NCBI GenBank assembly: GCA_002269645.1
Contig: NIVC01003647.1
Location: 1-64,000, forward strand
Direction of reading: 5' to 3'
From: Macrostomum lignano
Lineage: Eukaryota
DNA length: 64,000 nt
Of the stretch, positions 46,301 through 58,300 are shown in pieces. The translations under genes were made by a program, and so were the position numbers. Below the pieces are notes generated by a model. That model made no database searches, was not told the origin of the DNA, and saw only the letters and a list, made by a program, of their open reading frames with translations. Within the stretch, counting starts at the first letter, position 1; each line of letters starts with the position of its first letter.

Positions 46301-49300
46301 CACAGAAAAGCAGCTGGCAAACTGTTTAGTAAATTTATTATAATATTTATTGTTTTATTTTTATGCATCTAGATGACAAGATTAACATAGTTTCCAGCTA
46401 TTTCGCGTCAATTCCAACTTGGTTTGAATTACGAATACTAGAATAACTCAGCACATATGCGTGTAAGCTACTTTCAGTTCAGTAGTAAGTTAAACAAAAC
46501 ATTTTAATGTATTTTAAAGCCAAGGCTCATTTATTAGCTCTTACCCCCAGCTTAAACCCTCCAACCGCGCCTTTCCACACTGCCCCCCCGCCCCGCCCCA
46601 ATTTTTATTGCCTTTCTCGGAATTCCAGCCTAAAGCTGCCATGTACATTTCAGTGGACTGGCTAATGTACATTATTGCTGAACCAATTAGCAAGTTGGTT
46701 ACGCCTGCAAGCTTGGGGCTTCTAAACTTATCAAAGTCATTTTAGCTGCCTTTATTTTTATAAAATAGCTTATGTATTCTTCCTTGCTACTGAACTGAAA
46801 GTAGAAAGCTGTTTTACTAAGTGGCCTATGTAGTTATTTTAGAATCTGTGGTTTGAATTAAACAAAAAATATCTGTTTTAGCTTGTAGCTGTAGTTATTA
46901 AACACAGACGAACTGTAAGCTACTGAAAGTAGTTTCAATCGCTAATCAATGCTTCGGGTTTTCGTTGCAGAAATTCGGCCATTCAACGACGCAGGGCCGA
47001 GTCCAGTGCAGAAGGAATGCCTGAAAGGCAACAAAGTTCAGATTGAGTGTCGGCCGCCGCACTCCGTGCCACCTGCCGAGATCAGCTTCACTGTCGATGG
47101 GGTGGCACTGACCCCGCTAGGTGAGAAGCGGCTGGGAGTGCATCAGGGATGAGGGGGGGGGGCAAAATCAAGGCAGATGACAGCCGGCCAGTCGCTCACA
47201 CGGGGTGTACAGCGGCACTGAATTTCTCGTCAGGCATGTACAGTCTGTGTGCATTGCGGTTTGGCCGAATGAACTACAAATCTTAAAAATCTACAGAGCT
47301 TTATTAATCATTAGCATGTTTGCTAAATCGATACTTGAGTTTCAAATCGTTGGCAAATATTTCTAATAAAGATGGATTATTTATAGTCGCACTAGTTAAG
47401 TTAATCCGACTTTTAAAAGTCATAACTAAGTATATGGCGACTTCAAACTTGTAACAAAATTTAGGACAACGTGAAATTATGTATTCCTACTGTAAATTGC
47501 TGTATTCCTACTGTAATCTACTGTATTCCCACTGTAAACTACTGTATTCCTATTGTAACCTACTGTATTCCTACTGTAAATTGCTGTATTTCTACTGTAT
47601 TCCTACTGTAATCTACTGTATTCCTACTGTAATCTACTGTAATCTACTGTATTTCTACTGTAATCTACTGTATTCCTACTGTAATCTACTGTATTCCTAC
47701 TGGAATCTACTGTATTCCTACTGTAATCTACTGTATTCCTACTGTAATCTACTGTATTTCTACTGTAAACTACTGTATTTTTTACTGTAAACTACTGTAT
47801 TTCTACAGTAAATTGCTGTATTTCTATTGAAAAATACTATTTCTACTTTTAAAATGCTGTATTCCTACTGTAATCTACTGTATTCCTACTGTAATCTACT
47901 GTATTCCTACTGTAATCTACTGTATTCCTACTGTAATCTACTGTATTTCTACTGTAATCTACTGTATTCCTACTGTAATCTACTGTATTCCTACTGTAAT
48001 CTACTGTATTCCTACTGTAATCTACTGTATTCCTACTGTAATCTACTGTATTCCTACTGTAATCTACTGTATTTTTTACTGTAAACTACTGTATTTCTAC
48101 AGTAAATTGCTGTATTTCTATTGTAAAATACTATTTCTACTTTTAAAATACTGTATTTCTACTGTACATTGCTGTATTCCTACTGTAATCTACTGTATTC
48201 CTATTGTAATCTACTGTATTCCTACTGTAATCTACTGTATTCCTACTGTAAATTGCTGTATTTCTACTGTAAAATACTGTATTCCTACTGTAAATTTCTG
48301 TATTCCTACTGTAATCTACTGTATTCCTACTGTAATCTACTGTATTCCTACTGTAATCTACTGTATTCCTACTGTAATCTACTGTATTCCTACAGTAAAT
48401 TGCTGTATTTCTACTGTAAAATACTGTATTCCTACTGTAAATTTCTGTATTCCTACTGTAAACTACTGTATTCCTACTGTAATCTACTGTATTCCTACTG
48501 TAATCTACTGTATTTCTACTGTATTCCTACTGTAAACTACTGTATTTCTACTGTAAACTGTATTTCTACTGTAAAATACTGTATTCCTACTGTAAATTGC
48601 TGTATTCCTACTGTAATCATGCTATCATGTAATCAATATCATACTAATAACAAGTTAACAAGCCTTGGTACTGTACTCAAAACGCCTGCACATACTTTAT
48701 AAACGAATTTCATCGATAACAGCTCTCTCAAGCCGACTTCATCGAGGTGAGGATAAAGATAAACAAACTCGAATTGCCAGTTGTTGCTTATTATCTAATA
48801 GCTTCTTGTGTTTTTTTGTCAAGCAATTTTAAACTAATCCCCAAAGTCGATGTGTTCCCATGTTTTCCACTTGTCTCTGTGGTATCCCTTTTTGTTTTTG
48901 TATTAATTTGATTACTAGCAATACGTCTCTATTCCCGTGTATATTACTGATGAGTACACACGTGCGATTGTTAGGATCATAAAATTTGTGCTTTTTCAAT
49001 TTATTTCCTTGTTACTTTATATTTACGCGTGAATAATTTGTTTTGTATAAGCTCTTTACAGTAAGATTTTTATTAATGCAATCATCATTAATATTTGCAT
49101 GATCAAACTGAATCTGTTGGCTGAAAGCTTTGTTGTCAATACGTTTACCCATAGCTATTTTTGTATTGAAAGCAGGTAATGCGATTTTTTAAAATCTTCC
49201 GAAAATCACTTATTTTTTACTGTTAGTAGTGTGGATAAAAACATGCCTATTTATTTGTATCGACCCGAATTCCAGATCGCTACCGCGTGGTTCGCCTGTC

Positions 49301-55300: not shown

Positions 55301-58300
55301 TGAACCGGCCGTCTGGCACGGAGACGGAGATCCACAGGACTGACGAGCCGAAACAATCCAACACCTACCTGTGGCACCACCCAAGATTGGCAAGGAGTAT
55401 AGGTTCATTGTGTCCTACCGCCTGCGCGGGGCTATTATTGACAGGGAGGAGCAGACTAATTGGAGCAATGTGATCAGCTTTCTTCACATTGTTGACAGTC
55501 GGCCTCGCATAACTGAGGTGCCCGTCAGTCTGCTGTACCCGTTGAAGTGAGTGCTCAAAATTTACTTTAATAAATTTGTTGTGTGAAAATGCAATTCAAC
55601 TACTTTTATTCAGTAGTAGACATATTTTATCATTCTTAGCTGACTGTGTAACAATATGTGTAACAGAGATGATAAAACAGATTCATAAAACCAGAGTTAT
55701 ATCAATCAGAAAGAAAGAGTGAATATCAATAGAGCTATAAGAAAGGCACAACAAATCAAAAGATGAACATTGGGTCTGCCTCCTATTGACAGCAATAACA
55801 ATTTCAAGATAAAAAGTGAACGGTTCCTATCCCCGTAGTGTATTTTTCGCTAAAAACCAGCCTCCTTAAGTTTTCCAAGAAATGTATTTTTCCGTCCTTC
55901 TGCTTTTATTCTGCTTCAGTACACTTGTATTTTGCACGCAGTCAGTTTCTTTAGACAAATAGACACGGAGTTGTCCTTGTTGCGTACGTATCCGCGCGCT
56001 TGTGTGCCTGCTCAGGGGAGTCGGCGTAATGGGCAGGCAGTAATGCCTCTCTCTCTATGCAAAACTGACACTTCCAGATGGGAATACACTGCGGACGCCA
56101 GGCACAAGGTGGTTGGCTTCACAATTTTACTGCGCAAAGCTGGCAAACGCGGCTATACTGCCTACCACGTGAAGAACGGCTCGGCTAGGCAGTTCTTTAT
56201 TCACGACCCCCTGCTATCTGGCGAGACCTACGAGGCTGTTATCTTTGCCAATCTGACCGATTTAACTGGCGGCGGCGCCAAATACCGATCTAAGCTGTCC
56301 GATAAGAGCTCGTTCAAGCTGAGACCCGTCGCCTCTGATGGAGACAGCGGCAAGAGCAGTAAAAAGTCGCTATTTTACATGTACATCATACTGGGCTGCC
56401 TTGGCGGCCTCACTCTTATTGTTATATTAACTGTGATCTGCCTGTGCGCCTATTGCAATCGGAGGGACAAATCCCAGCGAGCTCAGCAACCCAGTAAGTT
56501 TATCGTTCAAATCCAGATGCTACTTATTAGTACTATCTATAGAGAGCTAGCTTTTGCTCTGTAGGTTAACGGTTTTTACCATTTTAAATAAATTACCAAC
56601 CTTGATAACGGCTAATTGTCTAGCACTTACGAAGTATAACTAAATCGTTTCCGACTCTGATCATGTGAGATCCCACCTGGCTGACCCCCTTCCCCCCGTG
56701 GATTTCCCCACCTGGCTGACCCCCAGTGGATTCCCCCCCCCACCTGCTTGACTCCCCAGTGGATTCTCCCCACCTGCTTGACCCCCCAGTGGATTCCTCC
56801 CCCACCTGCTTGACCCCCCCAGTGGATTCTCCCCACCTGCTTGACCCCCCAGTGGATTTCTCCCCCACCTGCTTGACCCCCCAGTGGATTCCTCCCACCT
56901 GGCTGACCCCCAGTGGATTCCTCCCCCACCTGCTTGACTCCCCAGTGGATTCTCCCCACCTGCTTGACCCCCAGTGGATTCCCCCGCCTGCTTGACCCCC
57001 AGTGGATTCCCCCGCCTGCTTGACCCCCAGTGGATTCCCCCGCCTGCTTGACCCCTAGTGGATTCCCCCGCCTGCTTGACCCCCAGTGGATTCCCCCACA
57101 TGGCTGACCCCCAGTTGATTCCCCCACCTGGCTGACCCCCAGTTGGTTCCTATGCATCCATACGGATTGCCGACTAACTTCTAATAATTGTTTAAAAGCT
57201 TATTTATTCTTAAAACCTATTGAATTGATCTGACCACTTGGCAATCTTTCATCATTACTTCTAATTCTAGCTAATTTTAACTTAGAATTAATGCTGCACA
57301 ATTCTCTTTTCTCCCCGCTCGCATGCGCAGACGAAGCCTGGAGCAACACGTTTACTTATGGTGAGCTGTAAAACTGTAAAAAGTATTTATTAGCTTGGCG
57401 CTCAGTTTTGCTGCTTTATGAAACTTTGCTTACAAATGACAGTTAATCTAGTACTGAAATGGTAGTTTGTCGTCAGAAGCGGTTGCTGCTATTGAGTAGC
57501 AGTAGGTAGAACTGGGGTAAGCCGTAGGTAGAACTGGGGTAAGCCATAGGTAGAACTGGGGTAAGCGGTAGGTAGAATTGGGATAAGCCATAGGTAGAAC
57601 TGGGGTAAGCGGTAGGTAGAATTGGGATAAGCCATAGGTAGAACTGGGGTAAGCGGTAGGTAGAACTGGGATAAGCCGTAGGTAGAACTGGGGTGATTGG
57701 TAGGTAGCATTGGGAAGCGGTAGGTAGCATTGGGAAGCGGTAGGTAGCATTGGGAAGCGGTAGGTAGCATTGGGAAGCGGTAGGTAGCATTGGGAAGCGG
57801 TAGGTAGCATTGGGAAGCGGTAGGTAGCATTGGGAAGCGGTAGGTAGCATTGGGAAGCGGTAGGTAGCATTGGGAAGCGGTAGGTAGCATTGGGAAGCGG
57901 TAGGTAGCATTGGGAAGCGGTAGGTAGCATTGGGAAGCGGTAGGTAGCATTGGGAAGCGGTAGGTAGCATTGGGAAGCGGTAGGTAGCATTGGGAAGCGG
58001 TAGGTAGCATTGGGAAGCGGTAGGTAGCATTGGGAAGCGGTAGGTAGCATTGGGAAGCGGTAGGTAGCATTGGGAAGCGGTAGGTAGCATTGGGAAGCGG
58101 TAATGGGTAGTGATTAGAGCCAATGAGCTGATGCTGCATCAATTGATCACCTCAATCCCATGCAAACCACCCGCAGCCACCCAGATGCAGCCGGGCATGT
58201 CGGCCACCTACAAGGACCCGGCTAAGATAATTAACCGGGCCTCCCTGCACAGGCACGGCAGTCTGCAGCACCAGCAGCAGCAGCAGCTGATGCAGAATTC

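Follow-up and report, generated by a model that had tools for sequence, protein, structure and literature searches.

One annotated 21-nucleotide exon and three probable chance splice-site pairs in a predicted Ihog/CDON/BOC-like receptor gene of Macrostomum lignano

The introns of BOX15_Mlig026790g1, a predicted receptor gene of the flatworm Macrostomum lignano, contain several very short segments that are bounded by splice-site dinucleotides and preserve the reading frame, which raises the question of how many of them are exons. The gene is found in a stretch of 64,000 nucleotides (nt), referred to here as the window, that comprises positions 1 to 64000 of contig NIVC01003647.1 (assembly Mlig_3_7, GCA_002269645.1), and its deposited product is PAA50393.1 (“hypothetical protein BOX15_Mlig026790g1,” 624 amino acid residues). 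A first-pass annotation of the window had singled out four such segments on the plus strand, designated here ME1 (48723 to 48746), ME2 (50325 to 50342), ME3 (53641 to 53661), and ME4 (57331 to 57360), and interpreted them as a hidden set of alternative microexons that, used as a combinatorial code, could give rise to as many as 16 isoforms of an Ihog/CDON-like receptor. The explanation favored here, with a probability of approximately 0.6, is that ME3 is the one real microexon in this set, whereas ME1, ME2, and ME4 represent splice-site pairs that occur by chance in unique parts of the introns.

The segments themselves had been described accurately with regard to their coordinates, lengths (24, 18, 21, and 30 nt, respectively), and boundaries: each is preceded by AG and followed by GT, has a length divisible by three, is in phase 1-1, and contains no stop codons. 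Phase-1 splicing results in the junctions ...TPL[ALSSRLHRD]RYRVV for ME1, ...LLIVK[QHSTATD]AVAPR for ME2, and ...FSIQ[APASDIGT]SSLIV for ME3 and places the stop-free ME4 insert between ...AQQP and TQMQ.

A 21-nt exon in the fourth Ig domain

The locus of PAA50393.1 matches the window with 100% identity over 39.8 kb and with equal coordinates, and the protein maps back by tblastn to ten coding exons between positions 34230 and 55473. Its exact translation is obtained by joining the segments 34230-34311, 44708-45025, 46971-47120, 49276-49434, 52224-52547, 53381-53545, 53641-53661, 53776-53904, 54386-54604, and 55166-55473. ME3 is a required part of this join, as its omission results in a sequence that does not translate to PAA50393.1. 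The GenBank annotation was based on a genome-guided transcriptome (STAR, StringTie, and TACO) combined with a mapped de novo assembly and was filtered to “coregenes” (PMC5730564); being built from an RNA sequencing (RNA-seq) transcriptome, the deposited exon structure therefore mirrors RNA-seq. ME3 is a genuine 21-nt exon that is lineage specific and already annotated, and the description of the set as hidden is incorrect in that ME3 sits in the deposited coding sequence (CDS).

The introns that flank ME3 are 95 and 114 nt long, and both of its splice sites are strong. In the paralog A0A1I8HI01, which is 58% identical and comes from a different assembly, the corresponding region reads FVVQ-ETPSDPG-ASRLIV, versus FSIQ-APASDIG-TSSLIV in PAA50393.1. 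The third paralog, A0A1I8JI33/JHG1, and all aligned Ihog/BOC/CDON-like proteins have a 7-residue gap at this position. The ME3 insert arose within the Macrostomum lineage and is common to the gene studied here and one of its paralogs.

Structural placement of the inserts was evaluated with an AlphaFold (AF2) model of PAA50393.1, built from an alignment of 50 relatives, that had a predicted local distance difference test (pLDDT) value of 77.8 overall and >90 over the four immunoglobulin (Ig) domains; the single-sequence run (pLDDT of 35) was unusable. In this model, ME3 forms residues 400 to 406 in the D-E loop of Ig4, between the strands 396-399 and 407-412. The site of ME1 (residues 183/184) belongs to the C'-D loop of Ig2, and that of ME2 (residues 236/237) comes right after the last strand of Ig2 and before the first strand of Ig3. 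For ME1, ME2, and ME3, the model agrees with the locations that had been proposed initially. ME3 is spliced into the dominant whole-animal transcript, adding the peptide APASDIG to the D-E loop of Ig4, and may alter a binding or packing surface of that domain.

Another possibility, less probable than the favored explanation, is that ME3 is alternatively spliced and toggles the Ig4 D-E loop between a long lineage-specific form and a short ancestral one, with the other three segments again being chance pairs. This would refine the explanation favored here and would not exclude it. The ME3-skipped form stays in frame and restores the loop length of the third paralog and of all other family members, and an inner AG at position 53647 could yield a 15-nt version of the exon. 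However, the inclusion form is the only one on record: no ME3-skipping isoform was found among the deposited sequences, PAA50393.1 being the one protein deposited for the locus and standing alone in its 90% cluster. Furthermore, the short flanking introns and strong splice sites fit constitutive splicing equally well. The spliced junction of exon 6, ME3, and exon 8 was also sought in metagenome contigs by exact-pattern scanning, with no match.

The inner AG is located 6 nt into ME3 (ttgcag/CCCCAG/CATCC), and the in-frame 15-nt segment that starts there lacks the Pro-Ala pair and was the third-best candidate in the scan described below.

Chance level of frame-preserving intron segments

All exon junctions from exon 1 through exon 10 are in phase 1, as are 10 of the 11 introns of the gene model, including all the extracellular ones. 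Phase-1 introns are expected in genes for Ig domains, which have been built by exon shuffling. With every extracellular intron in phase 1, any stop-free AG..GT segment whose length is a multiple of three appears frame-preserving. When candidates were defined as intronic AG..GT segments of 9 to 51 nt that are stop-free, have a length divisible by three, and preserve the frame, the introns of this gene (21.8 kb in total) were found to contain 1,221 of them, including 35, 95, 3, and 53 in the introns that host ME1, ME2, ME3, and ME4, respectively.

These candidates were ranked by the sum of donor and acceptor scores from a generic metazoan matrix that had not been trained on M. lignano; on this scale, real exons of the gene have acceptor scores from -3.9 to 7.8 and donor scores from -1.4 to 5.3. 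ME4 ranked 1st (8.6), ME3 2nd (7.4), ME2 5th (2.5), and ME1 6th (2.1) of the 1,221. Such high ranks are to be expected, because the four segments had been picked by eye for their good splice sites. In first-order Markov shuffles of the gene's own introns, the mean numbers of segments that scored at or above ME1, ME2, ME3, and ME4 were 14.6, 11.9, 1.13, and 0.58, respectively, so the splice signals of the four are not better than those of chance pairs. ME3, the proven exon, is likewise unremarkable in this test; therefore, sequence alone cannot decide between real and spurious microexons, and external evidence is needed.

Candidates of equal quality that had not been listed include 49155-49175 (in the same intron as ME1), 41138-41179, and 46452-46484. 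The 8.5 kb of unique intron sequence contains 32 YAG..GTRAG pairs, 11 of them frame-preserving and many with a common donor, with no clear enrichment. One further frame-preserving AG..GT segment that had been passed over, 55920-55940, has a splice score near those of ME1 and ME2.

ME1, ME2, and the hinge between Ig2 and Ig3

ME1 (24 nt, ALSSRLHR) is skipped in both models that span its junction, PAA50393.1 and A0A1I8F6X4, and the paralog A0A1I8HI01 passes straight through this position with no equivalent. Its acceptor (...gataacag) scores -4.9, which is below every real acceptor of the gene. ME2 (18 nt, QHSTAT), at the Ig2-Ig3 hinge, is skipped in PAA50393.1, in its near-identical copy A0A1I8HZK6, and in another copy, A0A1I8F6X4. 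The proposal of four microexons was right in that ME3 is a true 21-nt exon with an Ig4 loop insert, but it is not supported for ME1 and ME2, which are skipped in the models, have chance-level scores, and are probably chance pairs. The absence of ME1 and ME2 from these models is a weak negative, because the TACO isoform fraction setting of 0.75 and the end-to-end mapping by STAR could lose minor or tissue-restricted isoforms with exons of 18 to 30 nt (PMC5730564).

This caveat is one of several points that weigh against the favored explanation. The evidence base consists of the window sequence and of deposited models and proteins, and the splice scores come from the generic matrix. In the paralog A0A1I8HI01, the Ig2-Ig3 hinge of the predicted horseshoe is longer by 12 residues, QPFLEPSGSPYE, which sit precisely at the junction of exons 4 and 5 and show that this intron position can host additional coding sequence in this family; the insert could be a 36-nt exon of that paralog. 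Finally, ME4, which is located in a region that has no transcript model (see below), surpasses every other candidate in its splice signals, the proven ME3 included.

Homology of QPFLEPSGSPYE to the ME2 peptide QHSTAT or to intron 4 of the window was considered and rejected, as the alignment scores were equal to those of the controls. In the A0A1I8HZK6 model, exon 2 is followed immediately by exon 4, and the 150-nt exon 3, which encodes the first half of Ig2, is skipped in frame; this could reflect either an annotation error or an exon-skipping isoform.

ME1, ME2, and ME4 do reside, as had been noted, in unique islands beside minisatellites, at distances of 105 nt, 219 and 437 nt, and 181 and 138 nt from the arrays, respectively. 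Such placement is not special, since nearly every intron of the gene holds a minisatellite. No second copy of the islands was detected within the window, and on these grounds their interpretation as dispersed repeats was rejected.

The minisatellites in the introns between positions 34647 and 58102, almost one array per intron, have periods of 4 to 36 nt and a different unit in each array. The longest one, a GAGAGT-like array at 37824-41050, extends over 3.2 kb.

ME4 and the unannotated 3' half of the gene

The deposited CDS does not extend to ME4. Within exon 10, the reading frame changes from frame 0 to frame 2 between positions 55344 and 55470 (near 55380), and the full spliced CDS would need one more base for a length divisible by three; one base is apparently missing. 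Addition of a single base, e.g., in the CCC run at approximately 55384, results in an uninterrupted protein of 1,389 residues. This protein begins with a signal peptide and continues through the four Ig domains, the Pro-rich linker, and two FN3-like domains to a transmembrane (TM) segment; its tail, which comprises ∼600 residues, is rich in Gln, His, and Gly. As a consequence of the frame change, the last 34 residues of PAA50393.1 are out of frame, the open reading frame ends at a stop codon at 55473, and the second FN3-like domain, the TM segment, and the tail are not included. Exons 11 to 13 are unannotated but have canonical splice sites and remain open across >2.2 kb of coding sequence; no annotated protein that matches them is on record. 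Because these downstream exons stay open over such a distance, the frameshift would appear to be either an assembly error or a very recent change. The earlier statement that the protein is complete with or without each of the four segments accordingly holds once exon 10 is repaired, but not for the gene as assembled, in which the stop codon at 55473 precedes ME4.

ME4 (30 nt, juxtamembrane, cytoplasmic) has an 18-nt pyrimidine-rich tract, a TGC adjoining the AG, and a GTGAGC donor. It is the most credible of ME1, ME2, and ME4, and its use as an exon is unlikely without being far-fetched. The corresponding explanation, in which ME3 and ME4 are both real, ME4 being either a cassette exon or a constitutive juxtamembrane one that escaped annotation when the frameshift truncated the CDS, and ME1 and ME2 are chance pairs, is somewhat less probable than alternative splicing of ME3. 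It gains from the top combined acceptor and donor score of ME4 and from the fact that its region has no annotated model, so that nothing contradicts ME4. Against it, chance alone would supply about 0.6 such pairs in the introns of this gene, exon 11 can be spliced directly to exon 12 in frame, and the paralog model P0038 contains no peptide like that of ME4, its similarity in the tail being limited to low-complexity sequence. An exact-pattern scan of metagenome contigs for ME4 found nothing, and a profile search across M. lignano paralogs identified no NCBI copy with DNA that would allow a comparison of conservation; the copies A0A1I8HZK6 and A0A1I8F6X4 have no gene record. Taken as a chance pair, which is most likely what it is, ME4 would join ME1 and ME2 as a segment that is not used as an exon.

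A still less probable reading holds ME3, ME4, and possibly an exon in the hinge, where ME2 would lie and where the 12-residue insert of A0A1I8HI01 hints at one, to be tissue-regulated microexons that would remodel the Ig4 loop, the Ig2-Ig3 hinge, and the juxtamembrane tail. It is highly improbable that ME3 was produced artefactually during transcript assembly or annotation and that none of the four segments is real: although the deposited model is an automated StringTie/TACO product with an obvious 3'-end defect, both ME3 splice sites are strong, and a paralog on a different assembly has a peptide of the same length, with the shared pattern xPxSDxG, at the same position. The least probable explanation, that all four are independently regulated cassette microexons giving up to 16 isoforms, can draw on the preservation of the frame by each of them, on the location of their sites in loops, a linker, or the tail, on their 1st, 2nd, 5th, and 6th ranks among the splice pairs, and on the regulated microexon program of planarians (PMC4978528), but that ranking is not independent of the choice of the segments by eye, scores like those of ME1 and ME2 arise 12 to 15 times in shuffled introns, none of the available models across the ME1 and ME2 junctions includes either segment, and no alternative isoform has been deposited, which leaves the combinatorial code unsupported.

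Organization of the gene

All exons are on the plus strand, and those up to position 55473 in exon 10 are defined by the exact splice join. Exon 1 (34230 to 34311), also located by tblastn, contains the start codon and encodes the signal peptide, ending in a phase-1 donor (TTG/gtgagt). Exon 2 (44708 to 45025) encodes Ig1, as also seen in the AF2 model. Ig2 is split between exon 3 (46971 to 47120), which ends with ...ALTPL in phase 1, and exon 4 (49276 to 49434), which ends with ...LLIVK plus C, also in phase 1; candidates ME1 and ME2, neither of which has direct support, are located in the introns after exons 3 and 4, respectively. Exon 5 (52224 to 52547) encodes Ig3, and exon 6 (53381 to 53545), which ends with ...DFSIQ plus G, encodes the first half of Ig4. 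ME3 follows as a phase 1-1 exon, and exon 8 (53776 to 53904) encodes the second half of Ig4. Exon 9 (54386 to 54604) encodes a linker rich in Pro, Gly, and Ala with pLDDT values of <50, and exon 10 (55166 to 55546), the one with the frame change, encodes the first FN3-like domain.

The remaining exons are predicted from open reading frames and canonical splice sites. Exon 11 (56078 to 56493) would encode the second FN3-like domain and the TM segment; exon 12 (58177 to 59271), with a 365-codon open frame, the Gln/His-rich cytoplasmic tail; and exon 13 (59453 to 60162) the end of the tail and the stop codon. The candidate ME4 is located between exons 11 and 12, in this unannotated part of the gene.

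Upstream of the gene, the window contains a 206-codon open reading frame (25055 to 25675, plus strand) whose C-terminal half is rich in Lys and Glu and resembles a coiled coil. No Rfam RNA family was detected anywhere in the window, and no mention of Mlig026790 was found in the literature searched.

Receptor family and fold

The predicted product of BOX15_Mlig026790g1 is an Ihog/CDON/BOC-like receptor with type I membrane topology. Its four Ig domains are predicted to form a horseshoe and are followed by the Pro-rich linker, a pair of divergent FN3-like domains, the TM segment, and the Gln/His-rich tail. Judged by its sequence, the Ihog/CDON/BOC-like label appears reasonable: the signal peptide, four Ig domains, FN3-like domains, TM segment, and long tail are all present, the last two after repair of the frameshift, and the proteins that match best in a co-linear fashion carry the names interference hedgehog-like, brother of CDO-like, and CDON-like. 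The initial assignment of the gene to this family is supported by both the domain layout and the closest matches.

The searches for families, PDB entries, and folds were made with PAA50393.1 as deposited. A phmmer search of PAA50393.1 against 1.84 billion representative sequences returned 398 hits. Receptor-sized matches that align in a single stretch from the N terminus include proteins named interference hedgehog-like from Bacillus, Portunus, Macrosteles, and Dinothrombium; single-stretch N-terminal matches were also found among those named brother of CDO(-like) from Branchiostoma, Limulus, Ostrea, and Protopterus and CDON-like from Saccoglossus, Diadema, and Tubulanus. The co-linear relatives span insects, crustaceans, a mite, Limulus, an oyster, a nemertean, a hemichordate, sea urchins, amphioxus, and a lungfish. 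These family names are automatic annotations, and the assignment is based on co-linear similarity, not on phylogeny; a few matches are called neogenin-, NrCAM-, neurofascin-, or neuroglian-like.

Pfam matches in the protein are limited to Ig families. The Pfam fn3 domain was not detected at an E value of ≤1, although two FN3-like stretches are visible by eye, with the W in ISW/WEY and the motifs YRFIVSY and YEAVIFA, and these FN3 domains are highly divergent. A PDB sequence search matched Robo1, contactins, UNC5, Dscam, and DCC and retrieved none of the solved Ihog, CDON, or BOC FN3 structures at an E value of ≤1. In the AF2 model, Ig1 to Ig4 (residues 27 to 460) are predicted to form a closed horseshoe that superposes on DCC (3LAF and 5Z5K) with TM-scores of 0.83 to 0.84. 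The model also superposes globally on contactins, sidekick, neurofascin, Dscam, and hemolin, and not on the extended Ig1-4 of Robo1. The PDB hits for the model did not include any solved Ig-domain structure of an Ihog, CDON, or BOC protein.

Comparison with known systems

The closest counterparts of ME3 are found in LAR-type receptor phosphatases (PTPRD, PTPRS, and PTPRF), in which the tiny in-frame exons meA (in an Ig2 loop) and meB (in the Ig2-Ig3 linker) alter ligand choice (PMC4423211). The likeness is that ME3 is an Ig loop insert, that the ME2 site falls in the Ig2-Ig3 linker, and that both proteins are receptors with Ig and FN3 domains. Unlike ME3, for which inclusion alone is documented, meA and meB have been shown experimentally to be alternative and to control binding; candidate ME2 has no such support.

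The VASE exon of NCAM1 consists of 30 nt in Ig4, and the mini-exons of L1, NrCAM, and neurofascin are likewise located in or near an Ig domain, in phase-1 genes. They resemble ME3 in being short exons that add to or adjoin an Ig domain, in their case in neural adhesion molecules that combine Ig and FN3 domains. In contrast to these exons, which are conserved in vertebrates and developmentally regulated, ME3 is confined to two M. lignano paralogs.

Among flatworms, Schmidtea mediterranea has 262 alternative microexons (PMC4978528). Flatworms do use symmetric exons of ≤27 nt, many of them included more in differentiated cells, with no link to the gene studied here. The micro-exon genes (MEGs) of schistosomes encode secreted proteins that are made almost wholly of microexons; unlike them, BOX15_Mlig026790g1 encodes an Ig receptor.

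Within the receptor family itself, the RefSeq entries X1 to X4 of the BOC/CDON-like protein from Ostrea edulis contain two independent cassettes that give rise to four annotated isoforms, so combinatorial splicing in this family is not unprecedented. The oyster cassettes, one of 16 residues that follows the signal peptide and one of 37 residues that corresponds to half of Ig3, are not loop microexons. No report of microexons in M. lignano or in CDON, BOC, or Ihog was found in the literature searched.

Implications

The abundance of frame-preserving AG..GT segments in genes of the Ig superfamily calls for caution, as microexons are not callable in them from the DNA sequence alone. The public gene model was also found to be defective, in that the frameshift near position 55380 conceals ∼770 residues that comprise the second FN3-like domain, the TM segment, and the tail. 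Should ME3, ME4, and perhaps the hinge exon turn out to be regulated, this would be the first description of microexon tuning in the Hedgehog co-receptor family, and in an early-branching flatworm. Regulation of either ME3 or ME4 would extend the principle that microexons tune the surfaces of Ig receptors to Ihog, CDON, and BOC and to a basal flatworm that is amenable to transgenesis.

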